Shown: in pieces, positions 4,798 through 33,462 of the stretch | How the letters are laid out: each line of letters opens with the position of its first letter | Position numbering within the stretch: the stretch's first letter is position 1 | Virus record (IMG/VR): IMGVR_UViG_3300042484_002457 | Span: 124,001 to 188,000 of that record | Length of the DNA stretch: 64,000 nucleotides | Strand: one strand, 5' to 3' | The notes under the pieces: generated by a model | Seen by the model: the letters and a program-made list of their open reading frames with translations, nothing else | Told to the model about the DNA's origin: nothing | The model's database searches: none | Program-made: the position numbers and the translations under genes

Positions 4798-5515
4798 GAA
4801 CATCACCAATGATCTTGTGTCGCTGTACGTCCCTGGATTCTAGTGGGCATACAGCGATTCCTTTGACCGGATGTGCTTGCAATCGATCACAAAGATCCAT
4901 CAAGCCGTTGTCGCCATTGGCGCGATCAGCTTGTTCTACGTCTCCTGTGATAACAATGCGACTGTTGACTCCAATACGAGTCATTAACATTTTGGCCTGT
5001 GCTGGTGTTGCGTTTTGCATTTCGTCTGCGATGATCCACGAGTGTTTGAATGTCCTGCCGCGCATGTAGGCCAGTGGCGCAATTTCAATGACTTGATCTT
5101 CAATCATGGCCACAATGTCTTGTGGTCTATAGTGTTCACGTAGTACGTCTAGCAAAGGCCTAGTCCATGGTTCCATTTTGGCGACCAAGTTGCCGGGCAA
5201 GAATCCGTGTTGTTCGCCTTCAACACCCACTGCTGGGCGTGTCATAATGATTCGTTCGCAGTCTCCTTCTTTTAATGCTTTGATTGCTGCCAACATGGCC
5301 AAGTAAGTTTTACCTGTACCTGCTGGCCCTGCAGTAACTACAATGTGCTGCCCTGGGTCTTGCAGTGCCATTACCAACTGTTCCTGATTTCGTGTTCGAG
5401 GGATCAAGTCTATGCGGCGCTGTGCCGCCTTAGGTGCCGGGTTAAAGGCTATGGTGTTTTCTACAGTTTGATTCATTCTCTTGTTTTGTGCTTTCGCAGC
5501 GCGGTTTCTACTCAA
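4778..5515 (-). CDS. phoH: PhoH-like ATPase
   Basis: GPAGTGKTYLA, GFLPG, YMRGRTF, IADEMQN, ITGDVEQAD; likely TTG start at 5515 behind AAGGAG. Confidence 0.92.
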   Translation of the reverse strand: MSRNRAAKAQNKRMNQTVENTIAFNPAPKAAQRRIDLIPRTRNQEQLVMALQDPGQHIVVTAGPAGTGKTYLAMLAAIKALKEGDCERIIMTRPAVGVEGEQHGFLPGNLVAKMEPWTRPLLDVLREHYRPQDIVAMIEDQVIEIAPLAYMRGRTFKHSWIIADEMQNATPAQAKMLMTRIGVNSRIVITGDVEQADRANGDNGLMDLCDRLQAHPVKGIAVCPLESRDVQRHKIIGDVLKLYSR

Positions 5516-5669
5516 AGTATTTTCTCCTTTAGTCCTCTCGGACCTGTTATTTACGGGCCTGCGCAACATGATAACACAACATTGATTTAACAACACCTGA
5601 TCACTAAATACTGACCTGGCGGCGTATTCCACAAAAACCCTGCTCTTGGTCAATCGACTAAATATACGC

Positions 5670-6278
5670 ATGGACCGAGAACTCTTTAAAGACCACACTG
5701 ATTACTGGCAAGTTGCTGACAACATCCGCGACATCTACATGAGCGACGGCAGTTTGACCACGCTGTTGGATTTTGAGCGTGTGCTGGACGAAGTTGATAT
5801 CTACGCATTTAAAAACTGGGAAATTGGCGAGCTTGTGGCCGGTCCTGAAATTGGCCGATATCGTGTGAGCTGCACATTTATGTGGCCACTCAAACTCATG
5901 CCCGATCCACGTGGCGGACGCAGACTGTTGAACTACGACTGCGAAATAAGTTATCAACGCAAAGAAATAAAGATTCCTGTAAAGATCACAGACCCCAGTG
6001 ATTATCGCCCTGGCACCAAAAAAGCCAAGTTAATGACACAGGAAGTGTGGCTGGTGGAAATTGTCATGCCCAAGGCCTTGATGAATGATATTCGCACTGG
6101 ATCAATTGAAATGGAAGATGAGGATATTGATCTTGAAGAACTGGATCAGGCCTATGAGCAAGATCTAGATCAGGAAGCCAATCAGAGTGATGAGGCTGCC
6201 GATGATGCACAGGCCAGCCTGGACACACCCAACCCTGGAGGCGCACCAGCTGCTGCGCCAGGACAACCACAGATTTAA
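5670..6278 (+). CDS. hypothetical phage protein with acidic C-terminus
   Basis: ATG 5 nt downstream of TAAATA (5659-5664); 202-aa ORF. Confidence 0.75.
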   Translation: MDRELFKDHTDYWQVADNIRDIYMSDGSLTTLLDFERVLDEVDIYAFKNWEIGELVAGPEIGRYRVSCTFMWPLKLMPDPRGGRRLLNYDCEISYQRKEIKIPVKITDPSDYRPGTKKAKLMTQEVWLVEIVMPKALMNDIRTGSIEMEDEDIDLEELDQAYEQDLDQEANQSDEAADDAQASLDTPNPGGAPAAAPGQPQI

Positions 6279-6280
6279 TC

Positions 6281-6847
6281 ATGAATACTTTTAATCCTTT
6301 TGACCCTGCCCGCCCCTTGCTGCTGGAAGGCCTACAGTACAAAGATCTTGACGGCATCATGAAACCCACAGTGCACGTGGATGAATTTTCTGCCAAACTG
6401 GGCGAAGATGCTGATGTGATTGTACTCAGCTTTTTTGTGCGCGACAAGCAAGCAGCACGTGATCTAATGGGCTGGTTTGAAAAAGGCTATGATTTTGTAC
6501 TAGATGCTGATGTCAGCCCCGGTGAAATCAAGCCTGGCCGGTATCTGGTGTATGTGGAAATTCGTCGCCGCAGCGCAGTACCTCGCCATGTTCAAACCTT
6601 GTTGGATGATCTTTCTACCCTGACAGAATTTGAGCCTGAAGACTGGCAGTTTGTGTATGAGGATGGTGACTTTGGCTGGGACCAGGATGAATTTATCAAA
6701 CGCATTCCACTAACACCCGACGCATATAGAGCCAGAAATGAATCTGATCTAAATGAAATGAGAGCTGCTGCCGGCTTGAAGCCAGTGCAGATTCATACTC
6801 CGCGGAGTGATGTCAAGGCATTAATGGCCGCAGCAGGGATATTGTAA
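6281..6847 (+). CDS. hypothetical phage protein
   Basis: 188-aa ORF coupled to the next gene by TAATG. Confidence 0.75.
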   Translation: MNTFNPFDPARPLLLEGLQYKDLDGIMKPTVHVDEFSAKLGEDADVIVLSFFVRDKQAARDLMGWFEKGYDFVLDADVSPGEIKPGRYLVYVEIRRRSAVPRHVQTLLDDLSTLTEFEPEDWQFVYEDGDFGWDQDEFIKRIPLTPDAYRARNESDLNEMRAAAGLKPVQIHTPRSDVKALMAAAGIL

Positions 6848-9800
6848 TGTTACTAAACCACTTGTTTGAAAACCGCCCCGGGGGCACACTAAACGAATTT
6901 GCACCTGCAGGTGGTGGTGGCAATCGCATGGGTGGTGGTCGTATTGGCGGTGGCGGAGATGACGATGGTGCCGGTGATGATCCCTACAAGTATCCACAGC
7001 CAGACCACTATAGCCGTAGCATAGACTTCTTTGGACGGTTTGAAGCAGATCATTTTGACGACGAAGAGTTTGACAAAGCCACAGGCGAGTTCCGGGGCTA
7101 CTGGGACGATCAAGAGGGCCGTGATCAGATTGCCTATTTCAAGTTTGACAATCCCCGACGCACCGGAGACGACGACCCAGGCATGGGCTGGTACTACGAG
7201 CCACAAAATGAAAGCATGGCAGAAGCACAAACTGAACCTGAGCAGCAACAGATTGATGCTAACCGTCAAGCAGCACTGCGTCGTGAGCGTGAACCTGGTG
7301 GCAGCGAAAAGATTGATGCCCAGCTGGCACAACAAAATGCACAGCGCCAAGAATATGAACGCACTGGCAACTTCTGGCTCAAGCGCAAAGACACACAAGA
7401 ACACATCAGTGATGAGTTTGTGGGCAAAGCTGCCGCAGTGGCTGCTGCACAAGACTTGTTGAAACAACAACCTGATTTGCGTGGCAACATTGTGATCACA
7501 GCATACGGCCCAGGCGAAACTCAGGGTGTGGCGGAAGGCTTCAAGAACATGTACGCAGAGTTCTCTGGATACGGAAACTACATGCAAGGTCGTGCTGTCA
7601 ATGTATTCAACAAAGCTGGCTTGGAGATTGTCAGCAAAGATTACACAGAAGATGATGACATACAAACCTATGTTGTAAAGGGTGACCGCCAAGCTATCGA
7701 AAAAGCCGGCGAGTTCTTGGAACGCAATCCCGAACAGTTTGGCGGATATCACTTTGTCAAGCAAGGTGTGGCGGAAGGCGGATATCCTGAAGTTGACCAT
7801 ATGCCAGGTCCCACTATAAAGAGAACACAGACTGGTTGCAAAAGATGCCACGGCAAGGGCTATGTTTATAAAACACCAGACGGTGAAGTTCATCCTATGA
7901 ATCGTCCAGATGCCAAGAAATACAAATGTGGCAAATGTGATGGTATTGGGTTTGTCAAAGTAGCAGAGCAAGGTGTGGCGGAAGGCTCACAGGATAATGG
8001 AATTAGTTTTCGTGTACAAAAGGGTAAAAATAAATTTGTCACTACCATGACAGTTAATAACGAGCAGGTGGGTGTATACCAATATGATGCTACTACAGGT
8101 CGTAGCATAGCCGAGGTTTATCCAGAATTCAAGGGCAAAGGATTTGGTAAATTATTGGTTTTACATGCTATCTATACCGCGGCCAAATTAGGATTAGATT
8201 TCCAAGAAGATGAATCAAGAACTGCTGAGTATGATAATGTGTTAGACAGTTTGAGTAGCAACAGTTATATTGTAGATGATGATGGATATTGGTACGTTAC
8301 TGGTGAGGGCGAACAATACCTACAACAATCATTAAAACAAGGTGTGGCGGAAGGCAAGAGAATGAAAACTGCCAGCGGCATGTATCGTGACCAGCATACT
8401 GGAGTTGCCTACAGAGGAAAAACAGGACAAGATGGAAACGATAGTTATATGACTCCTGATTACTTGATTCAAAAGTATCAAGAGCGTTTAGCGCAAATTG
8501 CATCAGGTCCATACAAGCGTCCTAAAGAAGTAGCACAACTAAAATCTCGTATTGCTAAACTACAAGGTCAGCAAGGTGTGGCGGAAGGTGCTCCTATTGT
8601 AGTGGCACAGGCTCCTATTCATATTCGCAATCCTAAGAAACAACAAAGTCGTCAAGACAAGCCACTTACAGCATACCAACAAGGTGTTGCAGCACAGGGC
8701 AAGCCATACAAGAATCCGCATCCGTTTGATCCTAAAGCAGGCGCAGATGTGAACTACGACCATAATCAATATCGTGCTGGATATAAGAAGCAAGGTGTGG
8801 CGGAAGGCTCCTTGGAAGAAATAGACCGTAGAGGATTCTTAAAAGGCATGGGTGCAGCGGCAGTAGCAGGCACTGGACTATCACCTATGCCTGCGAAAGC
8901 CTGGTTTTTCTTTATAATACCATTACCTAACACTAACCCAGATGCAGCGGCAAATGCATGCATGCCTCCGACTGTCCAGGTCGGACAACAGGTAAATTTT
9001 CAAAACGAATTACAGGTCATACAAAAAATACACGGAGTCTCTAATAGATGCCAAAATCCAAATATGCCTGTGGCTGTCACTATTGGCAAACCTGAACCCG
9101 TTCAAGCACCAGTAGTAAAAGAACCTCCTAATCAAAAAACACCTCCGAATTACGCATCAAGAATTATAGCTAGAATAAGACCAAACATTCATTATTCTGG
9201 CGACACCTCAGGTAATCCACGTGCAGAAATTGAAGTTCGAGTATCTTCTGATGGTACAATTACCGGAGTAAAATTAGAAAAATCAAGCGGTAACTCAGAG
9301 TGGGACCAGGCTGTAATTGATGCTGTTAAAAAAACCCAAACAATGCCTTTAGATTCTACTGGTAATGTTCCATCTATTATGATAATGGGTTTTAGACCAA
9401 TGGATAATCAATCTTTACAAAGAGAAAGCGTTGACCAAGGTGTGGCGGAAGGCGGTGAGAAAGATCGTCAATGGTCCAACAAAGACATGGAGAGGCTGCG
9501 TGTTGCTACCAGAGACTTTGATGATATAATGGCATCTGATGGACCTGACCAAACCAAGCACGATTTAATTAAGAAGCGAATTCAAACAAAACCAATGGCA
9601 GGTCCTAAAGGCGTATTGCCGGAGGAAGGTGTGGCGGAAGGCGGATACAGCGGTATCGACGATACTGACACCGTGGGCTTTAGCGTCAACAGTGAACGGG
9701 CATACAATGCAGTAATGGCTCGCTTTGGCGACCAGATTGATCATGACGAAACTTCGGGTATTCTGTATGTGCCTGCACGTTTGTGGCCCAAAGTAGAAAT

Positions 9801-10014
9801 GGTAGCTTTTGATGCCGACGGCGAAGGTGCTACACAAACTGATGGCTTGGACGAAGGCGAGAAAGTTGGCAACATGGATGCTGATGCATTTGATGCTGCC
9901 ATGGCCCGCCTTAAAAAGCTAGCAGGCGCAGGACCAATGAAAACAGTTTATGACCCCAACAAACGTGTGTATCGTAATGTGCCCACAGCAGTTCAACCAG
10001 GTACCAAAAAATGA
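6847..10014 (+). CDS. modular polyprotein (putative packaged internal protein) with QGVAEG-linked modules including a CxxCxGxG zinc finger, a GNAT domain, and a Tat signal plus TolA/TonB C-terminal domain
   Basis: 1055-aa ORF; eight Q/E-GVAEG linkers; CKRCHGKG...CGKCDGIG; VYPEFKGKGFGKLL; DRRGFLKG; SSGNSEWDQAVIDAV. Confidence 0.8.
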   Translation: MLLNHLFENRPGGTLNEFAPAGGGGNRMGGGRIGGGGDDDGAGDDPYKYPQPDHYSRSIDFFGRFEADHFDDEEFDKATGEFRGYWDDQEGRDQIAYFKFDNPRRTGDDDPGMGWYYEPQNESMAEAQTEPEQQQIDANRQAALRREREPGGSEKIDAQLAQQNAQRQEYERTGNFWLKRKDTQEHISDEFVGKAAAVAAAQDLLKQQPDLRGNIVITAYGPGETQGVAEGFKNMYAEFSGYGNYMQGRAVNVFNKAGLEIVSKDYTEDDDIQTYVVKGDRQAIEKAGEFLERNPEQFGGYHFVKQGVAEGGYPEVDHMPGPTIKRTQTGCKRCHGKGYVYKTPDGEVHPMNRPDAKKYKCGKCDGIGFVKVAEQGVAEGSQDNGISFRVQKGKNKFVTTMTVNNEQVGVYQYDATTGRSIAEVYPEFKGKGFGKLLVLHAIYTAAKLGLDFQEDESRTAEYDNVLDSLSSNSYIVDDDGYWYVTGEGEQYLQQSLKQGVAEGKRMKTASGMYRDQHTGVAYRGKTGQDGNDSYMTPDYLIQKYQERLAQIASGPYKRPKEVAQLKSRIAKLQGQQGVAEGAPIVVAQAPIHIRNPKKQQSRQDKPLTAYQQGVAAQGKPYKNPHPFDPKAGADVNYDHNQYRAGYKKQGVAEGSLEEIDRRGFLKGMGAAAVAGTGLSPMPAKAWFFFIIPLPNTNPDAAANACMPPTVQVGQQVNFQNELQVIQKIHGVSNRCQNPNMPVAVTIGKPEPVQAPVVKEPPNQKTPPNYASRIIARIRPNIHYSGDTSGNPRAEIEVRVSSDGTITGVKLEKSSGNSEWDQAVIDAVKKTQTMPLDSTGNVPSIMIMGFRPMDNQSLQRESVDQGVAEGGEKDRQWSNKDMERLRVATRDFDDIMASDGPDQTKHDLIKKRIQTKPMAGPKGVLPEEGVAEGGYSGIDDTDTVGFSVNSERAYNAVMARFGDQIDHDETSGILYVPARLWPKVEMVAFDADGEGATQTDGLDEGEKVGNMDADAFDAAMARLKKLAGAGPMKTVYDPNKRVYRNVPTAVQPGTKK
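7522..9642 (+). repeat. eight dispersed in-frame direct repeats, consensus CAAGGTGTGGCGGAAGGC
   Basis: Copies start at 7522, 7762, 7969, 8338, 8572, 8791, 9436 and 9625; 14-nt core GGTGTGGCGGAAGG is invariant; periods 240/207/369/234/219/645/189 nt. Confidence 0.95.
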
Positions 10015-10166
10015 GAAGCACTGCTAACGGTCGTGTTATAAGAACACTGCCTGGCGCTACAAAACCTGAAGCTCCTGTACAACCTCAGCAGCCCCAGGCC
10101 CGGATCAAACGAGCTATGCCAATAGCAGCGCTACTACAAAGTCATAGATTCAGACTAAACCCATGA
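10011..10166 (+). CDS. small hypothetical protein (51 aa, not in ORF track)
   Basis: ATGA overlaps at both ends; MRSTANGRVIRTLPG... Confidence 0.5.
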   Translation: MRSTANGRVIRTLPGATKPEAPVQPQQPQARIKRAMPIAALLQSHRFRLNP

Positions 10167-10597
10167 GAAATTTTATCAATCTAATAGAAGCAGTGCAATC
10201 TGGTTGCCCACCAGCTACCCAGAGCATTGAATTGAATCTAAAAAATCGTCAAAAAGCCATTGAAGAATACCATTATGGTCCGTTGAATCCCAACGAGCCC
10301 AATCAAGAATACTGGGCTGAATTGGCTGACAAATGGAACACCAATGACATTGAATCAGTCAAAAACAACCGCTGCGGAAATTGTGCTGCATTTGATATCA
10401 CAGACAAAATGCTAGACTGTATTGCCAAAGGCATTGGCTCAGAGCCTGGGTCAGACCCACAAGGCACAATTGATGCTGGCGATTTAGGCTATTGTAAGTT
10501 TTTGAAATTCAAGTGTGCTGCACTGCGCACCTGTGATGCCTGGGTTGAAGGCGGCCCTGTAACAGATAAAAAAGATGAGAGCACAAGAATTCGTTGA
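10163..10597 (+). CDS. Cys-rich hypothetical protein
   Basis: CGNC...GYC...KC...TCDAW; N-terminus MRNFINLIE. Confidence 0.7.
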   Translation: MRNFINLIEAVQSGCPPATQSIELNLKNRQKAIEEYHYGPLNPNEPNQEYWAELADKWNTNDIESVKNNRCGNCAAFDITDKMLDCIAKGIGSEPGSDPQGTIDAGDLGYCKFLKFKCAALRTCDAWVEGGPVTDKKDESTRIR

Positions 10598-10871
10598 AGC
10601 TGATCTGGGTACTAACCCACGTAGAGCAGCCCGACAAGGGTCAAGACCTCCACGCGGGCACAACCCTGTGCCGCGCTATCGTAGTAAAAAAGCCGAGCCT
10701 GACCAGGAACAACTGGACGAGCTGATGTTCATGAACATGAGTCCCTGCAAAACTGACTGCTCGGGACACAGAGCAGGCTACAAATGGAGCAAGGATCGCG
10801 GCGGTGTCAGCACTGCGTCCTGGAGCGACAGCTTTAATCGCGGTGCTGAAATAGCCCGAGCAGGCTATTAA
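10575..10871 (+). CDS. hypothetical protein, putative internal head protein
   Basis: N-terminus MRAQEFVE; CKTDCSGHRAGYKW module after LDE. Confidence 0.7.
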   Translation: MRAQEFVEADLGTNPRRAARQGSRPPRGHNPVPRYRSKKAEPDQEQLDELMFMNMSPCKTDCSGHRAGYKWSKDRGGVSTASWSDSFNRGAEIARAGY

Positions 10872-11602
10872 CGTCGAGTATAAACAAAATACAACCTACC
10901 CAGTTCGGTAGGTTCTTTTTTGAATGTGTCTAGATTCAAGTTGTATTTTTCTGCAAACGCATTAACAACTTCAAAGCTCCAGGGAAAGATATCCACATAC
11001 GGGCCTGTTCGGTGTGGAATTCCTGGGTTGGCTCGCAAAAAGAATTTGCCACCTGGGCGCAAGAGATTCACACAGTGCGAGAATCTTTCTTCAATTTCAT
11101 CCTGTGAATTAAAGTTGATACTGCCCAGCGCAATGATCACGTCGTAGCTCTCAGGTTTTACTTTGTAATCCAGTATATCTACTTCATAATCAGCAGCGTC
11201 ATTGTAAGGATCAATGCCAACAATATTGTTGATACGCCCCTTGAATGGATGATAGCCGCAACCTACATCTAAGACTTTTTCTGGATTCAGCTTGTTAACT
11301 TCGTCAGCTAGTTCCCAGCCTGTGTGTTCGTAGTCGCCTGTACGCGGCTTCCAGATTTCTGCAAAAAATCGCAATATGTAACGCTCGCTAAGATCATCAA
11401 CAATGTCTTTTAGGGTGCCCACGTAATCACATGGCAGATGTAGCTCTGCTTCTACTGCGTCTTTGAATTTGCGATATCGAGCCGGAGTCCATGGCAACGA
11501 ATCTACAACAGTATTTGCATCGATTGCAATGTTTGCATACTTGGGTAAAGCAAATGCAGTCTGCAAATTTTTTATTAAGAGAGAAAAAATTTTGTTATTC
11601 AT
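10868..11602 (-). CDS. class I SAM-dependent methyltransferase
   Basis: VLDVGCG, GIDPY, YDVIIALGS, LLRPGG. Confidence 0.85.
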   Translation of the reverse strand: MNNKIFSLLIKNLQTAFALPKYANIAIDANTVVDSLPWTPARYRKFKDAVEAELHLPCDYVGTLKDIVDDLSERYILRFFAEIWKPRTGDYEHTGWELADEVNKLNPEKVLDVGCGYHPFKGRINNIVGIDPYNDAADYEVDILDYKVKPESYDVIIALGSINFNSQDEIEERFSHCVNLLRPGGKFFLRANPGIPHRTGPYVDIFPWSFEVVNAFAEKYNLNLDTFKKEPTELGRLYFVYTRR

Positions 11603-11692
11603 AAATATTTTGGTATATACAGTAGAAATTTTACAGGGAATAGTAAAAAATTATAACCTCCCTGGATAATTTATTATATTTAAGGAAACAAC

Positions 11693-12661
11693 ATGAACCT
11701 CAAAAAATTATTAGCAACATTTGCTGTTGCACTTCCGATGCTAGCATTAGCATTTACACCGCCCAAAGTGGTTAACGTCACTGTGGGATATGCACCCGGA
11801 TCTGGTAACGAAACCTCATTTAGGGGAGTTGCAGCCATTGTAGAAAAAGCCAACCCAAACATCACATTTGTAGTTACAAATCGCCCAGGCGCTGACGAAG
11901 TAGTAGCACTAAACCATTTTATGAAACTGCCTGGTGATGGACACAATCTGTATATTAGTAGTCAGCAAGGGGTTTTTACCACTATCGAACAGTGGTATCC
12001 GGATCAGATCAAATTCAACCCGCTGGACATGGAATTGGTCACAACTATTGCTAAATCTCCATTGGCTGTGATTGCCAATATTGATTCTCCTACTAACACT
12101 CCGCAAGAATTACTAGCACGTCTCAAGAACACTAACAAGCCTATTACATTTGGTCTAGGTGCTGGCGCTCACAAGCTGGTGTTTGAATACTTGATGGATC
12201 GAGGCCAAGGCAACCACAATCAAGTCAAGTCTGTGATGTATCGTGGTCCTGCACAAGCCGCACAGGACGTGGCTGGCAATCAGGTAGAGTTTGGAATCAT
12301 GCCTACAGCAGTGGCCTATGGTCTTTATAAAGCAGGAAAAATCAAGTATATTGCATTAGCATCAGAATTTAAACTGACTCAACTGCCTAACGTGCCACTG
12401 TGGAAAGATTCTGGCATGCCCGGTCTGAACATTTATGGTGCTTGGATGATTGCACTACCACCGGGAACTCCTAAGGAAATAGTAAAGTATTATCAGGACT
12501 TGTTTGTGCCAGCCATTAGATCAGCCGACGCCAAACAGTTTTTTGATTCAAACTTGATGTTTCCGGTACCTGCTGAGCAGAGTCCTGAAGGAGCTCGAAA
12601 GTTCATAATGAGTATTCGAGAAACCTGGATCCCATATGTGAAGAAAATGAAGTTAGATTAA
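11693..12661 (+). CDS. Bug/TctC tripartite tricarboxylate transporter substrate-binding protein
   Basis: Signal peptide; VGYAPGSG, VVTNRPGA, DGHNL, YRGPAQAAQDVAGNQV, LPNVP, PPGTPKEIV. Confidence 0.88.
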   Translation: MNLKKLLATFAVALPMLALAFTPPKVVNVTVGYAPGSGNETSFRGVAAIVEKANPNITFVVTNRPGADEVVALNHFMKLPGDGHNLYISSQQGVFTTIEQWYPDQIKFNPLDMELVTTIAKSPLAVIANIDSPTNTPQELLARLKNTNKPITFGLGAGAHKLVFEYLMDRGQGNHNQVKSVMYRGPAQAAQDVAGNQVEFGIMPTAVAYGLYKAGKIKYIALASEFKLTQLPNVPLWKDSGMPGLNIYGAWMIALPPGTPKEIVKYYQDLFVPAIRSADAKQFFDSNLMFPVPAEQSPEGARKFIMSIRETWIPYVKKMKLD

Positions 12662-17475: not shown

Positions 17476-17943
17476 ATGTGGATTTTGCACTTTCTTCCTG
17501 ACGCTGTAATACTGTGGTTCACCAACCTGTTGCTGTTTGCGGGTGTTGCACTCACAGTGGCTGGATTTTTTATTCATCGAATTCCGTCCCCGTTGATATA
17601 TCAGTATCAATTGCCATTCAAAATAGTAGGCGTTGTTCTGCTGGTACTGGGCGTGTATTTTCGTGGCGGCTATGCTATAGAAATAACCTGGCGCGAGCGT
17701 GTGGCAGAAGTAGAAGCCCAGTTGCGAGTTGCTGAACAACAATCAGCTCAAGAAAACACACGTATAGAAACTCGAGTAGTTAAAAAGACCGAATACATCA
17801 CACGTCGCGGATCAGATATTGTTCAGTATGTTGACCGTGAAATCGTCCGGTATGACACCAAGTTTGCTCCTGGCGGACAGTGTGAAATACCACGAGAATT
17901 TATCAAGGCCCACAATCAGGCCGCTGAGGCACCACCCAAATGA
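17476..17943 (+). CDS. putative inner-membrane spanin (Rz-like)
   Basis: N-terminal TM helices, coiled coil and C-terminal Cys; near endolysin and lipoprotein genes. Confidence 0.55.
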   Translation: MWILHFLPDAVILWFTNLLLFAGVALTVAGFFIHRIPSPLIYQYQLPFKIVGVVLLVLGVYFRGGYAIEITWRERVAEVEAQLRVAEQQSAQENTRIETRVVKKTEYITRRGSDIVQYVDREIVRYDTKFAPGGQCEIPREFIKAHNQAAEAPPK

Positions 17944-19118
17944 AATTCAAAGACTTTCGAACAGAAGAAAAAGTACGCTTGGATCCCAAGTGTTGGACAG
18001 GTAAAAAAATTGGCAACCCCAAGACCAAGGTCAAGGGTGGAGTTAGAGTCAACAACTGTGTGCCCGCTGAATCTGTTGAAGAGGCTGTAAATCCTGCACA
18101 ACAGGCTGCTATTGCTATTGCTAAAAAGAAAAAGAAACAAGGTCTGAAGGAAGGTACAGACAATCCCTACGGATATCGCAAAGGGCAAACTGTAAAACTT
18201 GGCAATGGTCAACAAGGTCGTGTCATTGATATTTTTGATGACAGCATTGAAGTTTTACTAGTTGGCGGCCGAACAGTCACAGTAGACTTCCGTGATGCAC
18301 GGGTAATCGACGAGCAAGGTGTGGCGGAAGATGCTGTGGCAGATTTCTTGGCTCGTGGTGGAGAAATACAAAAAGGCAAGCTACACAAACCACGCAAGGG
18401 TGAAACTTGGCAAGGATCATCACACATTGGTGCAGCAGGCGGAAAAGGTACCAAAGGCACAGTGTCGGGTCGAGCTGCTAACACCAATCCCAAAGGTGGC
18501 AAGCCAGTGGTCAGTGCTGAAGGTTTCAACCCTGAATACAACGACGAAGCAGGCATGGCCGACAACAATCTTGAAACCTTGGAACGTGCTGTGGCAGGTA
18601 TTGACGACCTAATTCAAACCGGTGATAACTTGCCAGAGTGGTGTCAAGAAAAGATCGCAGTGGCCAAGTCAATGTTGGTGGCTGTATGGGACTACATGGA
18701 AAGTGAAGAAGACTCTGAGGAAGTAGATCCTGAAGTGGACGAAATGTTTGAAGCCATGCAAGACCTGGTGTCAGAAATGGCCCAGAAAAATCGTGTGAGT
18801 GAAGATCTAGTGTGGGAACAGTTTGAAGCCATGCCGGATAACGTACTGTACGAAACAGCAGCTTGGCGTCGCAAAGAAGGCAAAAGCGCCAAAGGTGGAC
18901 TCAACGCCAAGGGTGTGGCCAGCTATCGCAGAGAGAATCCTGGTTCAAAACTACAAACAGCAGTCACAACCAAGCCCAGCAAACTCAAGCCAGGATCCAA
19001 AGCAGCCAAGCGCCGTAAATCATTCTGTGCAAGAATGGGCGGAGTCAAAGGACCAATGAAAAAGCCCAATGGCAAGCCCACACGCAAAGCTCTAGCCCTA
19101 CGTAAATGGAACTGCTAA
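17940..19118 (+). CDS. modular polyprotein, putative internal head protein
   Basis: MKFKDFRTE start; short modules bounded by x-x-E sites; QGVAED linker at 18315; basic C-terminal module ...RRKSFCARM...RKWNC. Confidence 0.75.
   Translation: MKFKDFRTEEKVRLDPKCWTGKKIGNPKTKVKGGVRVNNCVPAESVEEAVNPAQQAAIAIAKKKKKQGLKEGTDNPYGYRKGQTVKLGNGQQGRVIDIFDDSIEVLLVGGRTVTVDFRDARVIDEQGVAEDAVADFLARGGEIQKGKLHKPRKGETWQGSSHIGAAGGKGTKGTVSGRAANTNPKGGKPVVSAEGFNPEYNDEAGMADNNLETLERAVAGIDDLIQTGDNLPEWCQEKIAVAKSMLVAVWDYMESEEDSEEVDPEVDEMFEAMQDLVSEMAQKNRVSEDLVWEQFEAMPDNVLYETAAWRRKEGKSAKGGLNAKGVASYRRENPGSKLQTAVTTKPSKLKPGSKAAKRRKSFCARMGGVKGPMKKPNGKPTRKALALRKWNC
18315..18331 (+). repeat. ninth copy of the QGVAE linker repeat
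   Basis: CAAGGTGTGGCGGAAGA, in frame (QGVAED). Confidence 0.9.
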
Positions 19119-20006: not shown

Positions 20007-20023
20007 AATAACAGGAGCCAACC

Positions 20024-28354: not shown

Positions 28355-31300
28355 ATGAATATCGAAGAGTTAGATTCCTTCAATCTTGCAGACGCTGTGA
28401 AGTTTCACAATCAGTTAAATCCCCGATTGTGGGATCAGCGTGAACATCTCAAGCCTGATGTGCACGCCAAGCTCATGGAAATTGCTAGAGATTTCCAAGA
28501 GTTTCTGGGCGTTCCTGACCTTGAAGTCAAGGACATCACAGTATCTGGCTCAAATGCTGCATACAATTACACACCGCACAGCGATGTAGATCTACACCTT
28601 GTGGTGGATATGCCTGACGCTAAAAACAGCGAAGTGTTTCGCGAGCTGTTTGACGCCAAGAAATTCCAGTACAACGCTGAACATGACATTCGTATTGGCG
28701 GCTATGATGTAGAACTGTATGTGCAAGATGCTGAACAAGAGCATCACTCACAGGGCATTTACAGCCTGTTGCAAAACCGTTGGATCAGTGTGCCCAAGAG
28801 ACGCAAACCTGATGTAGATGATATCAGTGTGAAAAGCAAATACCAAGATGTGGGACACAGAATTGAAGCTGCTATCCGTGGCGGTGACGCTGCACAAATG
28901 GAAGATGTTTGGAACAAACTACGTGTGATGCGCAAGCAGGGTCTTGAGCGTGAAGGCGAGTTTGCCCCAGAAAACATTGTGTTCAAGATGCTGCGCAACA
29001 ACGGCACCATTGGCAACCTCAAACAAGCAAGACAGGCTGTGCGTGATCGAGAGCTGAGTCTTGCTGAAGTCAACCGCCCCAAGCAACGTGTGCATTATGG
29101 CTTTGTAAGTGAAAGCCCCGATGGTGTAAATCCCAGTACCAAGATGTTTCTTGAAGAAGATGATGCCGAAAGTCTTGTAACTGAATTTATTTTTACCACG
29201 GCTGACAAGCTGGGCATTAAACGTATACCAAAAATTCATATACACACCAATGATGACTGGAGCAGAGAAAACAACAGTTTTGGAATGTTTGTTCCTGACA
29301 CATATGAACTGCATGTGAGTTTGATAAATCGCCATCCCATGGATGTGATGCGCACCATTGCGCACGAACTAGCACATGTCCGTCAACACGAGATCAAGCC
29401 GGTCAAACCCGGTGATGGAGAAACTGGAAGTGATGTTGAAAACGAAGCGCATGCCATAGCTGGTATTGTCATGCGAGACTTTGCCAGCAGCCATCCTGAA
29501 TATTTTGAAAAGCCTGCTGTGAGCGAAAGCTCGGGATACATTCCTACCCGAGCACAGGCTCAAGATCCTCGCTTTAAAATGGCCCTGACTGTGGACATCA
29601 AGCCAGGACAAACTGGTAAGGAAGCCAACAAGCTGGCCTTGCAAACAGATGCACAAGGCCGTCCAGCACTGTTGATGAAAACAGCAAACCTGCGTGAAGG
29701 CCGGATGCCGCAGCCCAGCCAAGGGCAGGGCCAGTATAGAGATTTAAACAAGCCCCTGGGTCCAGAAACACCTCCTACCATGCCCGCAGGCACTGTCAAG
29801 GTAGATGTGAGTGATGTGTATGACTGGTACAAGCTGGGCAGTCATATCAGCAACCTCAAAGGTCTGGGCAAACACGACTTTGGCGCAGGACCTCCTAGTA
29901 CTATCATCAGTTTTGGTGATGAGGAAACTGAACACAAGTACATCCAAGACCTTGAAAAAACTGGACTCACTACCACAGATATTGACCCCAAGGATCCCAA
30001 GCAGCCTCCAGGAATGAAACGTCAAAAGACTGATCCCACCTACAACGTGGCAGAAGATGACATTGTAGAAAGCCTGCGTCAAGAATTTGCTTTGCTGGAA
30101 GACGAGTACATCAGCGAAATCAAAATGACCGGAAAGAACCTGCGAGCCGAAGCTGCTCAAACAGGTGCGCAGGCTGGCATGGAATTTGAAATGATTGTGC
30201 CCAACGTTGAGACCGAAGAGCTAGACCCTGAATACGAACCAGACTGGGATCAGGATCAGCGTACTAGAAGCTTCAGTGACATTCGAGACTTTTTCCACGA
30301 TGGAGACTACAACGGTCGTCGCGAAGCAGACAACCTAATGGAAGAAATACAAAACGAGTATGAAGAATGGCAAGCAGAACAAACTGACGAAGCCTGGGCT
30401 CGAGATGGAGTAGATTACATGCGTGACTTTGTTGAAGTCAATGACTTGTTTGATCGTGAAGAAGCTATAGACACTGCTCGAGACGAGGTCATTGACGCTA
30501 ACCCTGACTTGCCACCTGAAAGCAAAGACTTCCAGGACCTGCTTCGTGCCAGACTCGATGAACTACAAGAACAGTTTGTGCTAGAATCGTTTGAAGATCA
30601 AGGCCGCATCTACAATGACGCATTGCAAGCGTTTGCAGAAGAGCAAAGAGACGAATACGACGAACGCAGTTTCTTGGATGACAAGTATCCCATGATGACA
30701 GATATTCAAAGCAACTTTGATATTTCATGGCCCCACTACTACAACATCAACGATGGTCAAGACAGTGGAGAAGTGGATGTAGATCAAGTAGCTGATGAGT
30801 TTGGCTCATACATGGGCAAACCTGTGAATGCCAGCAGACAATACCATGGCGGTCGTCGCGAAGCAGGAACCTATGTAGTAGAACCCGACGGCAGCTTAGA
30901 AGGTGACAACCCAGGTGATGGTGGCCTTGAGTTTGTTAGTCCGCCCATGCCCATAGATGAAATGATTTCAGACTTGAACAAGGTCAAGGCCTGGGCAGAC
31001 AAGACTGGTTGCTATACCAACGACTCTACAGGCTTGCACATCAATATCTCAGTGCCCAATTATTCAATTGACAAACTGGACTATGTAAAATTGGCCATCC
31101 TCATGGGCGACGAATACATTCTGGACTTGTTTGGTCGCTCAGGCAACACCTATGCCAAATCAGCCATGGGCAAGATCAAGTCAGCACTGAAACAAAAACC
31201 CGAAGCGTCAGCACAAATCATGGACTTGATGAAACAAGGACTGGACGGTGCTGCAACCAAGGCCATACACACAGGTATCACAGACAAGTACACGTCAATC

Positions 31301-32476
31301 AACACCAAGACTGGCTATATTGAATTCCGTAGCCCCGGTGGTGACTGGCTGGACAGCAATTTTGACAAGATTGAAAACACCCTGTTGCGTTTTACTGTGG
31401 CCCTGAGTGCTGCTATCAATCCAGAAGCATACCGCAAAGAATACTTGACCAAGCTGTACAAGTTGTTGTCCGAAGGCATGGCGGACAAGAGTGACGTAAA
31501 CATTATTCAGTTGTTCTCCAACTACTCAGCTGGTGAACTGGACAAAGCTGCTCTAATCCGTCAAGTGCGTCAAAAGCAACTGGCTCGCAATGTTGCCAAG
31601 GGCAAGGCCACAGGCAAGATGTGGTGGAATGTTTCTAGACCAGGATACATGGGCAGCATCGAAGTTGTTGCTAACAGCAAAGAAGAAGCCATTGATGTTG
31701 CATTACAGCCGAGCAATTATCCAAACTGGGCAAGTGCTAGAAATACATTACAGGCTAAACCATTACGTCCATACCAAGAAAAGCCAAGCGCACCTGCACA
31801 ACCTGCTGCGGACAATCAAGGCAACTGGGGTATCTGGTTGGATGCTGCAGAACGCTTTGTCCGAATACCTCGCACCGAAACTGGTGGCGACGGGCAAGCC
31901 TTGCGTAGATTCTCTAGCCAAGCGGCTGCAATGGCGTTCTTGGAGCGAACTCGAGAAGAGAATCCACTAATGAGAAGAGACATCAGCATTCGCGAAATCC
32001 CTGCAGACTATCAGTGGCCACCCGTTGCACCGGCTGTTAACCGCAATACGCTGACACCAACCGGTCCTGGACCTTGGGAAGTGTTTAGAATCAGTGACGG
32101 GTCAAGTGTAGCAGAGCTGGGGCAGACCAACCGCATGAGTGCTGAAGTAGAAGCTCGCGGAGTGATTGATCAACGTGGCGAAGCACCTGAACTGTATGGA
32201 GTAAGAACTCGTCAGTCTGACGCAGCACAAGGTGGCACAGTTGATGTAGGGGGAGAAACACCTGCAACAGCACCGCAGACACTGACTCGTCCCGGACAAG
32301 GCCAACAACAGTTCACAGGCACATGGCGAGTGTTAGATCCTGAAGACCGTGAGATCTATCGCTTTAGTGGTGTGGGCAACAACCAATCAGATGCCAATCG
32401 TGTGGCCCTGAACTGGATGCGTCAAAATCCTGGTCGCATGCAAGCAGGTGTCACAGTGGTCCCGGAGATGACCTAA
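28355..32476 (+). CDS. multidomain polyprotein: nucleotidyltransferase, HExxH metallopeptidase-like and putative amidoligase domains plus C-terminal modules
   Basis: GSNAAYNYTPHSDVDLH; AHELAHVRQ; GMEFEM...EPDGSL...LEFVSPP...TNDSTGLHINIS...IEFRSPGG. Confidence 0.75.
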   Translation: MNIEELDSFNLADAVKFHNQLNPRLWDQREHLKPDVHAKLMEIARDFQEFLGVPDLEVKDITVSGSNAAYNYTPHSDVDLHLVVDMPDAKNSEVFRELFDAKKFQYNAEHDIRIGGYDVELYVQDAEQEHHSQGIYSLLQNRWISVPKRRKPDVDDISVKSKYQDVGHRIEAAIRGGDAAQMEDVWNKLRVMRKQGLEREGEFAPENIVFKMLRNNGTIGNLKQARQAVRDRELSLAEVNRPKQRVHYGFVSESPDGVNPSTKMFLEEDDAESLVTEFIFTTADKLGIKRIPKIHIHTNDDWSRENNSFGMFVPDTYELHVSLINRHPMDVMRTIAHELAHVRQHEIKPVKPGDGETGSDVENEAHAIAGIVMRDFASSHPEYFEKPAVSESSGYIPTRAQAQDPRFKMALTVDIKPGQTGKEANKLALQTDAQGRPALLMKTANLREGRMPQPSQGQGQYRDLNKPLGPETPPTMPAGTVKVDVSDVYDWYKLGSHISNLKGLGKHDFGAGPPSTIISFGDEETEHKYIQDLEKTGLTTTDIDPKDPKQPPGMKRQKTDPTYNVAEDDIVESLRQEFALLEDEYISEIKMTGKNLRAEAAQTGAQAGMEFEMIVPNVETEELDPEYEPDWDQDQRTRSFSDIRDFFHDGDYNGRREADNLMEEIQNEYEEWQAEQTDEAWARDGVDYMRDFVEVNDLFDREEAIDTARDEVIDANPDLPPESKDFQDLLRARLDELQEQFVLESFEDQGRIYNDALQAFAEEQRDEYDERSFLDDKYPMMTDIQSNFDISWPHYYNINDGQDSGEVDVDQVADEFGSYMGKPVNASRQYHGGRREAGTYVVEPDGSLEGDNPGDGGLEFVSPPMPIDEMISDLNKVKAWADKTGCYTNDSTGLHINISVPNYSIDKLDYVKLAILMGDEYILDLFGRSGNTYAKSAMGKIKSALKQKPEASAQIMDLMKQGLDGAATKAIHTGITDKYTSINTKTGYIEFRSPGGDWLDSNFDKIENTLLRFTVALSAAINPEAYRKEYLTKLYKLLSEGMADKSDVNIIQLFSNYSAGELDKAALIRQVRQKQLARNVAKGKATGKMWWNVSRPGYMGSIEVVANSKEEAIDVALQPSNYPNWASARNTLQAKPLRPYQEKPSAPAQPAADNQGNWGIWLDAAERFVRIPRTETGGDGQALRRFSSQAAAMAFLERTREENPLMRRDISIREIPADYQWPPVAPAVNRNTLTPTGPGPWEVFRISDGSSVAELGQTNRMSAEVEARGVIDQRGEAPELYGVRTRQSDAAQGGTVDVGGETPATAPQTLTRPGQGQQQFTGTWRVLDPEDREIYRFSGVGNNQSDANRVALNWMRQNPGRMQAGVTVVPEMT

Positions 32477-33462
32477 TGAGAGCACAAGAATTTGTAACAG
32501 AACTGTTTGAGCCAGGCAAAAAGTGGCAGTGGAGTTTTACTGGCAGTGAAGAAGCAGTAGCAGTATTTCATGTTGGTGAAGTGCCTTACATGTTCCATGC
32601 ATATGGCGCCGTCGGTGAATGGGAAGCAGAGTTCAAGCGGTATGGTAACAAACTAGATCGATCGCAAAAGTTTGGACTAACTGGCACTGGTAACTCAGCA
32701 GAAGTCATGAGCACAGTGGTTGACATCATGCGAGCGTTCTTGGAAAAATACAAGGACAAGATACAAGTGCTGACATTCAGTGCCAAGGAAGATTCCCGTC
32801 AGGGTCTATATGCCCGAATGGTCAAACGACTGCTGCCCGACTGGACCATGAAACAATCCGGTGAGCACTTTGTTCTTGTGGCTCCCAAACAAGATGTCAC
32901 AGAAACATGGGGTGTTGAAAAGTATCCTATTCCGCTGCCAATTGGGCAGTACCTTGCTGTTGGTAGTGATGAGTTTGCTCCGCCGGGCAACTATGCCAGT
33001 GCAGACGATCTTGTGGATGATGTGTACGACTTGATAGATGCAGGTGTTGAGCCCACAGTGGTTGCAGTTGATCCCAAGACTCTGTTGGCCACACAAGACT
33101 GGCTTAGTAACGAAGGCGGCGGCGATCCCTTGTTTGACGAGTACCCGGACAAGCCTGTGATATACAAGAAGGCAGGCAAGCTGTACATCCTTGACGGGCA
33201 TCACAGAACCACACGAGCTTGGAAAGCTGGTAGACCTATTTCAGTATACCTGTTTGGGGACGATCAACAAAACGAACTGGACGAAAACTTTGCAGATGGC
33301 CGAAACCCACAAGACAAAGGTGATTCAAAGCGTCACGGTATCAATACCAAAGCATCAGTTAGTAGTCTACGCAAAACTGCCAAACAAGGCGGCCGCAAAG
33401 GACAACTGGCACACTGGCTGGCTAACATGAAGTCTGGTAGAGCAAAGGCCAAACGAAAATGA
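32476..33462 (+). CDS. modular putative internal protein with a ParB/Srx-like module
   Basis: MRAQEFVTE start; ATQDWL...YILDGHHR; basic terminal module after LDE. Confidence 0.7.
   Translation: MRAQEFVTELFEPGKKWQWSFTGSEEAVAVFHVGEVPYMFHAYGAVGEWEAEFKRYGNKLDRSQKFGLTGTGNSAEVMSTVVDIMRAFLEKYKDKIQVLTFSAKEDSRQGLYARMVKRLLPDWTMKQSGEHFVLVAPKQDVTETWGVEKYPIPLPIGQYLAVGSDEFAPPGNYASADDLVDDVYDLIDAGVEPTVVAVDPKTLLATQDWLSNEGGGDPLFDEYPDKPVIYKKAGKLYILDGHHRTTRAWKAGRPISVYLFGDDQQNELDENFADGRNPQDKGDSKRHGINTKASVSSLRKTAKQGGRKGQLAHWLANMKSGRAKAKRK

Follow-up and report, generated by a model that had tools for sequence, protein, structure and literature searches.

The window, a 64,000-nt stretch of DNA from an uncultivated jumbo phage, contains a reading frame, 6847..10014, within which about ten unrelated small proteins are encoded. 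The gene is translationally coupled to two genes for virion proteins, and a PA5oct homologue of the first of these has been detected in virions by mass spectrometry. Two other samples yielded an identical assembly of the reading frame, and a third contig carries its first 148 residues, at which point the contig ends (L001-L003). The gene and the neighbours that bear on its interpretation are as follows.

3285-4154: homing endonuclease gene, 2.7 kb upstream of the polyprotein
5646..6847, + strand: pair of upstream genes with matches to PHROG families of virion structural proteins
6847..10014, + strand: polyprotein ORF, 1055 aa, a 116-kDa chain; overlaps at its start, in TAATG, with the stop codon of the virion-protein gene upstream
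10575..10871, + strand: small gene with leader MRAQEFVE; conserved, and adjoins the polyprotein slot in relatives
17940..19118, + strand: second linker-bearing gene, with leader MKFKDFRTE, a small Cys module and a DUF6321 basic tail
28355..32476, + strand: 1373-aa multi-domain ORF with nucleotidyltransferase, zincin-like HExxH peptidase and amidoligase domains
about 29123-29509, + strand: the zincin-like HExxH peptidase domain of that ORF, a rival candidate for the processing protease
32476..33462, + strand: gene encoding a DUF6934 domain, a ParB-like motif and a basic tail, with leader MRAQEFVTE; probably another packaged protein

The polyprotein is punctuated by a short repeat. The sequence GGTGTGGCGGAAGG occurs in eight exact copies, at 7525, 7765, 7972, 8341, 8575, 8794, 9439 and 9628, all within the ORF and in its frame 0, and encodes QGVAEG seven times and EGVAEG once; the linker coordinates in the initial annotation are those of 17/18-mers that begin 3 nt earlier. 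With up to two mismatches allowed, chance would give 0.40 matches, and 100 shuffles never produced as many as nine. ORF 17940..19118 holds, at 18318 (18315-18332; QGVAE/D, the slash marking the predicted cut), a ninth copy that differs in one base, and a decayed copy, CAAGGTGTTGC (Q-G-V-A-A-Q), is found at 8680-8697, inside module 6. Cuts after the glutamate would give pieces of 230, 80, 69, 123, 78, 73, 215, 63 and 124 aa. Module-against-module BLASTP found no similarity except in the linker itself (all E > 0.3), so that both the eight in-frame copies and the mutual unrelatedness of the modules, as first described, are borne out. The first module carries a degenerate site, S-M-A-E/A, at residues 121-124 (7207-7218) and is therefore really two, listed here as 1a and 1b.

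6847..6870, + strand: N-terminal leader, MLLNHLFE; fits the family pattern M-x-x-x-x-[LFIV]-[FILV]-x-E and is similar to the capsid-targeting sequence of T4
6874..7218, + strand: module 1a, ending in the degenerate S-M-A-E/A
7219..7536, + strand: module 1b, the N-proximal module of many family members
7522..7539, + strand: linker 1, CAGGGTGTGGCGGAAGGC (QGVAE/G)
7537..7776, + strand: module 2, 80 aa, matching no known family
7762..7779, + strand: linker 2
7777..7983, + strand: module 3, 69 aa, a double CxxCxGxG zinc ribbon with a weak DnaJ central-domain match
7969..7986, + strand: linker 3
7984..8352, + strand: module 4, 123 aa, GNAT-like; homologues pass Pfam GNAT models
8338..8355, + strand: linker 4
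8353..8586, + strand: module 5, 78 aa
8572..8589, + strand: linker 5, ending GGT
8587..8805, + strand: module 6, 73 aa, with the decayed linker inside
8791..8808, + strand: linker 6
8806..9450, + strand: module 7, 215 aa, with a twin-arginine signal and a TonB/TolA C-terminal domain
8821-8901, + strand: twin-arginine signal of module 7, starting 5 residues past the cut site
9148-9381, + strand: TonB/TolA C-terminal domain of module 7
9436..9453, + strand: linker 7
9451..9639, + strand: module 8, 63 aa
9625..9642, + strand: linker 8, GAAGGTGTGGCGGAAGGC (EGVAE/G)
9640..10011, + strand: module 9, a small domain plus the conserved C-terminal tail
9841-10011, + strand: conserved C-terminal tail with R-L-K-K-L-A-G

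The modules recur elsewhere in other company. By HMMER (E <= 1e-3), single modules turn up in 2377 representative proteins, whose lengths run from about 100 to 1400 aa, and their place in the protein varies; the combination in the window has no second example, and the order can differ elsewhere, as in m6-m3 and m1b-m9-m1a. GenBank phages gave no matches to the polyprotein, and no description of such an arrangement was found in the literature searched. In other phages (L005, L043, P0006) module 1a forms a cassette of its own between linkers, module 1b is without any other window module in 15 of the 22 members of the examined set, module 3 is found with differing neighbours in L006, L007 and L008, module 7 is also encoded by a gene of its own (P0009), and of all cargo modules the GNAT-like module 4 is the most widespread. 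Behind one and the same conserved virion gene, the orthologous slot of relatives holds genes for 172, 374, 402, 457, 633 and 1055 aa; all have an MK-, MR- or ML-type leader, and a common C-terminal tail is kept in every such slot that has a polyprotein gene, while the interiors are unrelated.

Exchange, among hundreds of related phages, takes place at the linkers. BLASTP alignments end within 8 aa of a linker in 26-35% of cases, against 8% for random positions. At the DNA level, blastn homology tracts start and stop at the 18-mer (7760-7986 in L006, 96% identity; 7966-8355 in L038, 86%), and two gene pairs, L115/L127 and L017/L049, are 95-99% identical and differ only by cassettes replaced, recently, at linkers. 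The initial annotation had proposed that module content would vary among relatives with breakpoints at the repeat, and both are seen; the description of the array as integron-like stands as an analogy only, with no attC-like structure and no integrase among the ORFs examined.

The linker is also conserved as DNA. The other ORFs of the window use GGT, GTG, GCG and GAA at 0.33, 0.36, 0.074 and 0.74, and given this codon use eight identical GGT-GTG-GCG-GAA runs have a probability of about 3e-18 (about 5e-16 if the first copy is taken as given); alanine is GCG in all eight linkers, a codon used at 7% elsewhere in the window. Identity at the wobble positions, which had been suspected to exceed protein-level selection, is thus far above what codon usage predicts. 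The 17-mer is present in at least 120 viral contigs in 162 copies, all in frame and on the coding strand. In relatives chosen by protein similarity, 24 of 27 GVAE sites carry GGTGTGGCGGA, and at 154 sites outside the scan seed the exact 12-mer occurs at 58% (0.5% expected) and GCG at 79% (7% background). Whatever the divergence, codons are 80-96% identical at linker residues and 44-77% identical within modules, so relatedness does not predict the conservation of the linker either. Conservation is confined to about 18-21 nt, with neither a conserved structure in the flanks nor inverted repeats; the element is not palindromic. Orthologues with degenerate linkers exist (L152), indicating that exact DNA identity is not essential for protein function. 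We infer that recombination is the cause of this conservation.

Several features suggest that the linker is a protease site and that the products are packaged. N-termini in the family, for example MRAQEFIAE and MKINDIITE, resemble the MKTYQEFIAE/A of T4 ipII and ipIII (from NC_000866), a capsid-targeting sequence (PMC3012670, PMC5694885). The PA5oct protein EST35_0150, whose gene sits between the portal and protease genes, starts MKINDIITE/G and was identified as a virion protein by mass spectrometry. Among linker-bearing loci, whose closest cultured relatives are those of the window, homologues of gp21 (L027, L043), gp20 (L043) and gp23 (L027, L043, L063) are encoded, and in a head-gene cluster a linker polyprotein lies two genes past the capsid gene. 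The N-terminus of the clade's capsid protein carries L-L-E/G and I-L-E/N, aligning with the T4 gp23 sites, and both capsid and scaffold proteins have hydrophobic-x-Glu sites, with mostly L, I or M, not V, at P3. The R-L-K-K-L-A-G motif of the polyprotein tail is also found at the C-terminus of the clade's scaffold proteins. Lastly, all 14 twin-arginine (Tat) motifs lie 3-8 residues past a linker or near a true N-terminus. Together these sequence features argue for the reading of the linker as a protease site put forward in the initial annotation. For this particular genome the head protease gene, which falls outside the window, was not recovered.

We propose, with a probability of roughly 0.55, that ORF 6847-10014 encodes a precursor from which a T4-related jumbo phage derives internal head (ejection) proteins, and that the linker DNA doubles as a recombination joint. 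The short leader of the T4 capsid-targeting type would take the precursor into the prohead core, and the C-terminal tail, with its R-L-A-G motif as in the scaffold protein, may aid entry. A gp21-type head maturation protease would then cut after the glutamate in each Q-G-V-A-E/G, freeing about ten unrelated proteins of 7-24 kDa; the predicted module sizes fall in the range of the T4 internal proteins, whose ipI-III precursors have 95-193 aa. The freed proteins would remain in the capsid and enter the next host along with the DNA, where one of them could expose its twin-arginine signal and be exported to the periplasm. With the same 18 nt preserved in hundreds of contexts that have nothing else in common, a crossover or template switch between linkers, whether inside one gene, from gene to gene or across co-infecting phages, would give an in-frame, still cleavable precursor, so that cargo modules could be gained, lost and swapped as cassettes. 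If so, the linker is a built-in means of reshuffling the proteins that the phage carries into its host. Against this proposal, 18 nt is short for efficient homologous recombination, and the strict Q-G-V-A-E-G, with a V at P3 that most capsid and scaffold sites of the clade lack, is more specific than the three-residue gp21 motif requires. Polyprotein genes are also found among replication genes, and the enzyme and Tat-exported modules would be equally useful if made and cut in the producing cell.

This last point belongs to an alternative that we consider unlikely, in which the polyprotein is cut in the infected cell by another protease, a zincin-like metallopeptidase or a host enzyme, and its modules act there unpackaged, a gene-expression strategy as in RNA-virus polyproteins. 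Such a protease is possible because HExxH peptidase domains occur at the C-terminal end of L017/L049-type members and in ORF 28355-32476, and Iyer et al. predicted that such peptidases free the domains of polyvalent proteins (PMC5512222). The cargo, which includes nucleotidyltransferase, deaminase, NUDIX, GNAT and a Tat-exported TonB-like domain, would be of use in the current infection, and some family genes are distant from head genes. However, the window polyprotein itself has no HExxH motif, its leader is of the type found on the PA5oct virion protein, and the glutamate at P1 and hydrophobic P3 recur in the clade's capsid and scaffold sites. The coupling to virion-protein genes and the placement of another member within a head-gene cluster also favour the head-protein precursor.

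A second alternative concerns the DNA level only and is compatible with cleavage: the linker nucleotides may serve mRNA or translation, as a ribosome pause between modules or the site of an RNA-binding factor, with exchange as a by-product. GTG and GCG, both conserved, are not the preferred codons (family background 20% and 7%), each linker contains AAGGUG with its Shine-Dalgarno-like AGGUG pentamer, and copies are always coding-strand and in frame. We nevertheless regard it as doubtful, since conservation spans all 18 nt, beyond a pentamer or a rare codon, there is no conserved flanking structure and no Rfam match, orthologues with degenerate linkers function, and crossovers at the linker are directly evident.

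It is improbable that the 116-kDa chain works whole, as an uncleaved polyvalent protein with Q-G-V-A-E-G as a flexible spacer, even though certain proteins of that class, the N4 virion RNA polymerase among them, are packaged without processing (PMC5512222). The Tat signal at residues 659-685 passes the NCBIfam cut-off, and an internal Tat signal is not expected to work; the 14 of 14 placement, the stand-alone genes for modules and the invariant glutamate followed by a small residue, which a spacer does not need, all point the same way. Least plausible is that a dedicated recombinase or homing nuclease acts on the 18-mer as its core site, making the array of direct repeats a true integron analogue: a homing endonuclease gene lies upstream and GIY-YIG genes adjoin the polyprotein in L027, L043 and L063, but free-standing homing endonucleases are common across T4-like genomes, and the short, non-palindromic element has neither conserved flanks nor inverted repeats, nor an integrase or recombinase among the neighbouring ORFs examined.

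Of known systems, the T4 internal proteins IPI, IPII and IPIII, with Alt, come close. They too are small, unrelated, hypervariable cargo proteins with a leader of about 10 residues ending hydrophobic-x-Glu, they have roles against host defences and are delivered with the DNA (PMC3012670, PMC5694885), and a gp21-type protease is present in the clade as well. The first 30 nt of T4 ipII and ipIII are exactly alike. In T4, however, each gene has one cargo and one cut, whereas here up to ten cargos share one ORF with repeated internal sites, there is a conserved C-terminal tail, and the site DNA is conserved across hundreds of contexts. The polyvalent proteins that phages and conjugative elements encode, for which packaging and delivery together with the DNA are predicted and which Iyer et al. 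likened to viral polyproteins (2017, PMC5512222), combine many disparate conflict-type domains in a chain (GNAT, Pol-beta nucleotidyltransferase, ParB, peptidase), and relatives of ORF 6847..10014 carry the same kinds. They lack a uniform linker, no DNA-level joints or leader resembling a capsid-targeting sequence have been described for them, and domain release is ascribed to embedded zincin peptidases (PMC5512222), a domain that the window polyprotein does not have.

Short conserved sequences also occur as PeSL cassettes in hyperplastic regions of T4-type phages, where the general phage recombination machinery shuffles small genes, including via mini-circles (PMC2839356, PMC4122927). PeSLs are intergenic promoter-plus-terminator units that move whole genes, whereas the joint here is coding, in frame, within one ORF and doubles as a presumed protease site. 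The glycine-rich motifs of the T-even tail-fibre adhesin gp38 are likewise conserved in-frame motifs between hypervariable segments, with genetic exchanges in or near them (PMC3157838), but they are uncut structural parts of one folded domain and the segments are loops, not independent proteins. Integron cassette arrays share with this array unrelated, individually exchangeable units delimited by a repeated element. Their integrase, attI and structured attC are absent here, where exchange is presumably homologous, and their units are promoterless genes, whereas those of the phage array are protein modules that share one reading frame. Picorna-like RNA viruses, and African swine fever virus with pp220 and pp62, make polyproteins that are cut by a cognate protease. 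There, one ORF carries a repeated short cleavage motif at which a viral protease frees the products, the same plan as predicted here; gene order is fixed and the products are essential replication or structural proteins, whereas the content of the phage polyprotein is accessory and combinatorial.

The polyprotein (1055 aa) contains eight exact copies of the 14-mer GGTGTGGCGGAAGG, found by a scan of the window at 7525, 7765, 7972, 8341, 8575, 8794, 9439 and 9628, where 0.4 matches would be expected by chance with up to two mismatches allowed. All eight lie in frame and encode the linker peptide QGVAEG (seven copies) or EGVAEG (one copy). Predicted cuts after the linker glutamate yield pieces of 230, 80, 69, 123, 78, 73, 215, 63 and 124 aa, whose mutual similarity is limited to the linker itself. 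The scan and the module-against-module comparison thus bear out the initial annotation, which had described eight in-frame linkers between mutually unrelated modules. Its claim that the wobble positions are more uniform than the protein requires also holds: eight identical GGT-GTG-GCG-GAA runs have p ~3e-18 under window codon usage (in the other window ORFs, GCG makes up 7.4% of alanine codons and GTG 36% of valine codons). A degenerate site, S-M-A-E/A (a slash marks the predicted cut), occupies residues 121-124, a decayed copy lies at 8680, and a further copy with one mismatch occurs at 18318 in a second gene. The genes of the window referred to here are as follows.

3285-4154, minus strand: free-standing homing-endonuclease-like gene
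6847-10014, plus strand: polyprotein; conserved C-terminal tail at 9841-10011
17940-19118, plus strand: second linker-bearing gene
19386-20530, plus strand: endolysin (PHROG 181, E 2e-78)
21645-23909, plus strand: ClpA/ClpB-like double AAA+ unfoldase with Clp_N
28355-32476, plus strand: 1373-aa protein with Pol-beta-type nucleotidyltransferase, HExxH peptidase (~29123-29509) and amidoligase domains
32476-33462, plus strand: protein with a DUF6934 domain and a ParB-like motif

On its sequence, we rate the polyprotein as a candidate set of internal head proteins that the prohead protease would process and that are arranged as a recombination-ready cassette array. Full-length family members mostly begin M-[KR]-x-x-[DEQ]-[FLIV]-[FILV]-x-E, and T4 ipII and ipIII start MKTYQEFIAE/A (read from NC_000866). 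The polyprotein start, MLLNHLFE/N, has the roughly ten residues ending in hydrophobic-x-Glu of such a leader, a match to a short pattern rather than statistical homology. Leaders resembling the T4 capsid-targeting sequence open four window genes, at 6847, 10575, 17940 and 32476. In Pseudomonas phage PA5oct, the 73-aa virion protein EST35_0150, whose gene lies between those for the portal and the protease, starts MKINDIITE/G. Homologues of T4 head proteins are encoded at three viral contig loci found solely through the linker scan: gp23 at L027, L043 and L063, gp21 at L027 and L043, and gp20 at L043. A linker polyprotein lies two genes past the capsid gene. Across this set the capsid protein shares 66% identity with its PA5oct counterpart and the protease 63% with that of Phosso; the closest cultured relatives are those of the window. 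The gp21 homologues of L027 and L043 share 36-37% identity with T4 gp21 (E ~1e-16), and relatives are encoded in at least 593 viral contigs, the window genome's own protease gene lying outside the 64 kb. The clade capsid N-terminus carries the sites L-L-E/G, L-M-E/G, I-L-E/N and L-K-E/N, two of which align with L-L-E18 and I-F-E38 of T4 gp23, and the clade scaffold protein is rich in hydrophobic-x-Glu sites.

The linker is probably a cleavage site. That the head protease makes the predicted cut, and that the products would be packaged, we hold at slightly better than even odds. Two features speak against a head-protease site: P3 of the linker is Val, where the clade capsid has Leu, Ile or Met, and six residues are conserved in the linker, where a gp21-type site needs three. 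A real rival is that the modules are released by a zincin-like HExxH peptidase, because this is the peptidase that Iyer et al. proposed to release the domains of polyvalent proteins (PMC5512222). Such a domain is C-terminal in several family members and present in ORF 28355-32476, but the polyprotein itself has neither an HExxH motif nor a match to any peptidase family. The ClpA/B-like gene was rejected as the protease, as it encodes AAA+ domains only and no peptidase domain.

Cleavage at the linker would also expose a predicted targeting signal. Module 7 has a predicted twin-arginine (Tat) signal at residues 659-685 (NCBIfam TAT_signal_seq, 19.4 bits against a cut-off of 16.7; Pfam, 21.8 against a cut-off of 22.7), which would become N-terminal solely upon such cleavage. 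Downstream of it lies a TonB/TolA C-terminal domain (Pfam TonB_2, 66.8 bits against a cut-off of 22; NCBIfam tonB_Cterm, 35.2 against 27.1), and the module also occurs as a stand-alone gene, encoding family protein P0009. Across the family, 14 Tat signals were found, each 3-8 residues past a linker or near a true N-terminus. Their placement after linkers, like the sites in capsid and scaffold, lends indirect support to the predicted cleavage. At the other end of the polyprotein, the tail contains R-L-K-K-L-A-G, and the scaffolds of L027, L043 and PA5oct end in [KR]-R-L-A-G-[LI]. Tail-like C-termini are found in the scaffold genes L043 5430-6518, L027 790-1890 and L151 5875-6981, and family proteins P0130 and P0095 have exactly the scaffold-type ending. 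The common motif weakly suggests a shared contact inside the prohead, where it may serve for docking.

Conservation of the linker extends to its nucleotides. Among relatives chosen by protein similarity, GGTGTGGCGGA occurs at 24 of 27 G-V-A-E sites. At least 120 viral contigs carry the 17-mer CAAGGTGTGGCGGAAGG; among the matches listed, 162/162 copies are read as QGVAEG, and every copy except one at a contig end sits within a long open stretch. At 154 G-V-A-E sites of these loci that could not have seeded the scan, the exact 12-mer was found at 58%, against 0.5% expected, and GCG at 79%, against a background of 7%. With relatedness controlled, codon identity at linker residues is 80-96% at every divergence level, compared with 44-77%, depending on divergence, for identical G, V, A and E positions within homologous modules. 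The linker codons are thus conserved beyond both codon usage and relatedness. A census gave 275 canonical linkers, 41 single synonymous variants and ~33 non-synonymous ones. The logo of 271 distinct contexts shows (A)(G)CAA GGT GTG GCG GAA GG(C), some 18-21 nt, with no inverted repeat, palindrome, conserved flank or stem-loop. The canonical 12-mer is absent from 79 head-protease neighbourhoods of the clade (748 kb), so the linker is confined to particular genes. L152 3928-6177, the orthologue of the L043 polyprotein at 8618-9937, has the degenerate linkers GVTE, GVSE, AVAE and VDE, while the head genes of the two loci are 92% identical in DNA; canonical and decayed linkers therefore coexist among close relatives.

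We lean towards recombination as the reason for this conservation: crossovers at the linker are documented below, yet 18 nt is short and orthologues with degenerate linkers exist. It is also possible that the linker acts as RNA in translation, since it holds AAGGUG and two non-preferred codons. Other RNA explanations were rejected, as a scan of 5000-12000 found no Rfam family and a scan of the window no tRNA, so that a phage tRNA for GCG is not encoded here.

Orthologous loci were gathered through the conserved virion gene upstream of the polyprotein. Six of them have a gene in the polyprotein slot, and L143 and L145-L150 are without one.

Table. Length of the gene that follows the conserved virion gene
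Locus: length
Window: 1055 aa
L142: 633 aa
L144: 457 aa
L009: 402 aa
L141: 374 aa
L012: 172 aa

The slot genes share an MK/MR/ML-type leader and a common tail of ~50 residues, and their interiors are otherwise unrelated. Module content had been predicted to vary at this locus, and a variable array between constant ends is what we observed; content that is hypervariable between related phages is also a property of T4 internal proteins. Two gene pairs, L115/L127 and L017/L049, retain 95-99% DNA identity on the flanks of a replaced block. In the first pair, one 61-aa module in L115 stands in place of two other modules in L127; the left tract of identity ends 5 nt past the 12-mer of the first linker, and the right tract begins with the initial base of the 12-mer that follows. 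L017 and L049 have different cassettes after the first linker, including a ParB-like cassette in one and a zinc-ribbon cassette in the other, and identity returns at the edge of a linker. Cassettes are therefore exchanged at linkers that are themselves conserved in DNA.

The window's own modules have been shuffled in the same manner. With degenerate DNA patterns, back-translated from module-interior peptides, we found ten non-identical loci in viral contigs, with different module sets and the same linker. Tracts of DNA homology between the window and other loci have their edges at the 18-mer.

Table. Tracts of DNA homology to the window
Locus: window positions, DNA identity
L006: 7760-7986, 96%
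L007: 7760-7989, 91%
L038: 7966-8355, 86%
L019: tract ends at 7539
L004: tract starts at 9623

Together with the replacements in L115/L127 and L017/L049, these tracts confirm that breakpoints fall at the repeat, as had been proposed; with the synonymous-site result, both computational tests put forward for that interpretation came out in its favour, and it won further, independent support as well. A HMMER search of 1.84 billion representative proteins returned 2377 matches at E <= 1e-3, of which 252 reach E <= 1e-30; almost all involve a single module, at varying positions in proteins of ~100-1400 aa. In 274 family proteins, window modules occur mostly singly among foreign partners, and in other orders too. 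The edges of BLASTP alignments cluster at linkers (starts at -6/-5, ends at 0/+1 relative to the cut), with 26-35% of ends within 8 aa of a linker, compared with 8% for random positions. Assembly chimeras were judged an unlikely source of the apparent shuffling because the 18-21 nt repeat is not longer than the smallest common k-mers and because independent samples yielded the same assembly of the window ORF.

In function, the polyprotein comes nearest to T4 internal proteins with a targeting leader and to polyvalent proteins; in evolutionary mechanism, its nearest counterparts are PeSL-mediated shuffling in T4-type phages (PMC2839356) and exchange at conserved motifs of gp38 adhesins (PMC3157838). 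Polyvalent proteins, encoded by phages or mobile elements, combine 2-15 disparate domains in one polypeptide, typically a zincin peptidase hub, ParB, GNAT, nucleotidyltransferase and ART domains (PMC5512222). The polyprotein is comparable in domain number, with ~10 unrelated modules, and lacks the embedded peptidase, which resides in ORF 28355-32476 and in other family members. A search for conflict-type domains found only a weak GNAT match (E 2e-3, below cut-off) and TonB_C in it, and its relatives have GNAT, Pol-beta NTase, ParB, deaminase and NUDIX domains. PeSLs consist of an intergenic early promoter and a stem-loop terminator; the linker, by contrast, is coding and in frame. Unlike all four systems, the linker arrays hold many cargos per reading frame with one uniform internal site, whose synonymous positions are conserved in hundreds of unrelated contexts. 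The likeness to an integron drawn in the initial annotation holds as an analogy only: the slot and replacement data reveal exchangeable units, but the logo lacks the imperfect inverted repeats of attC-type sites, and the neighbourhood ORFs scanned with PHROGs and Pfam contain no tyrosine-recombinase integrase.

On a more tentative reading, at a probability of roughly 0.4, the 18-nt linker would be maintained as a dedicated in-frame recombination joint, and the arrays would be a protein-level counterpart of integrons, with thousands of effector cassettes, in a large clade of uncultivated jumbo phages. Any polyprotein with a capsid-targeting leader would then take in cassettes at its linkers, and every linker-to-linker crossover would leave a cargo set that could still be packaged, cleaved and injected. 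If true, this would constitute a simple, general design for diversifying injected phage proteins, in which many cargos share a single targeting leader and a short sequence acts as protease site and crossover point at once. The Q-G-V-A-E/G split rule would delimit thousands of small proteins without assigned function in metagenomes, many of which would likely act on host defences or the cell envelope, and the architecture would be a ready-made model for packing several proteins into engineered phage capsids. The modular theory of phage evolution postulated explicit linker sequences between modules; this old idea, that phage module boundaries carry dedicated linkers, would become directly testable. 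A six-codon linker whose synonymous sites are conserved in hundreds of unrelated contexts, and at which cassettes are replaced, appears to be undescribed: the literature searched does not describe the arrangement, and the bare peptide motif led only to papers on an unrelated human protein.

The source is an uncultivated jumbo phage, and the window spans 124001-188000 of its 209-kb IMG/VR contig. The DNA polymerase encoded there shares 44-52% identity with the enzymes of Sinorhizobium phage Phosso, Agrobacterium phage Atu_ph07 and Rak2-like phages. Immediately upstream of the polyprotein are two genes with matches to PHROG virion structural protein families; the product of the first has 38% identity to a PA5oct protein seen in virions by mass spectrometry, and the stop of the second overlaps the polyprotein start in TAATG. 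No match to the polyprotein was found in GenBank phage records (nucleotide and tblastn) or PHROGs, and thus no cultured relative with its modules in either; a PDB sequence search gave zero matches. The annotations of its database homologues consist solely of 'hypothetical protein' or of several enzyme names strung together. Scanned with a 20-mer, 185,579 bacterial and archaeal genomes yielded a single real match, L236, and neither a prophage nor a firm host; the other five matches, in high-GC chromosomes, look like chance. L236 is a small contig (39% GC) with three canonical linkers in a MAG labelled uncultured Bacteroidetes, a weak host hint, as the contig could be mis-binned.

The T4 late-promoter octamer TATAAATA is absent near the polyprotein gene. 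Two overlapping copies, one per strand, lie at 26256-26267, 22 nt upstream of ORF 26289-27350, and the window has a single other copy. The stretch from the second linker-bearing gene to the unfoldase gene contains the endolysin gene and a weak holin match. The ClpA/B-like unfoldase is conserved close to polyprotein genes in no fewer than nine linker-bearing loci, and in PA5oct too. Homing-endonuclease-like genes stand free near polyproteins in the window (3285-4154), L027 (3241-3987) and L043 (7870-8592); in the head cluster such a gene separates the polyprotein from the capsid gene, and PA5oct has one in the corresponding position. ORF 28355-32476 starts MNIEELDSF, as do other family members, has several hydrophobic-x-Glu sites between its domains, and looks like a classical polyvalent protein. 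The product of 32476-33462 starts MRAQEFVTE, near the T4 ipII/ipIII leader, and is probably another packaged protein; its very basic C-terminal tail is of a type recurrent in many family members. A few basic C-terminal tail types recur in hundreds of polyproteins, that of 17940-19118 included, and may have a role in DNA binding or in ejection:

DUF6321, ending ...RKWNC
...ENFADGK...MAHW.ANMK
a small two-Cys module, DPKCW...RVNNCV
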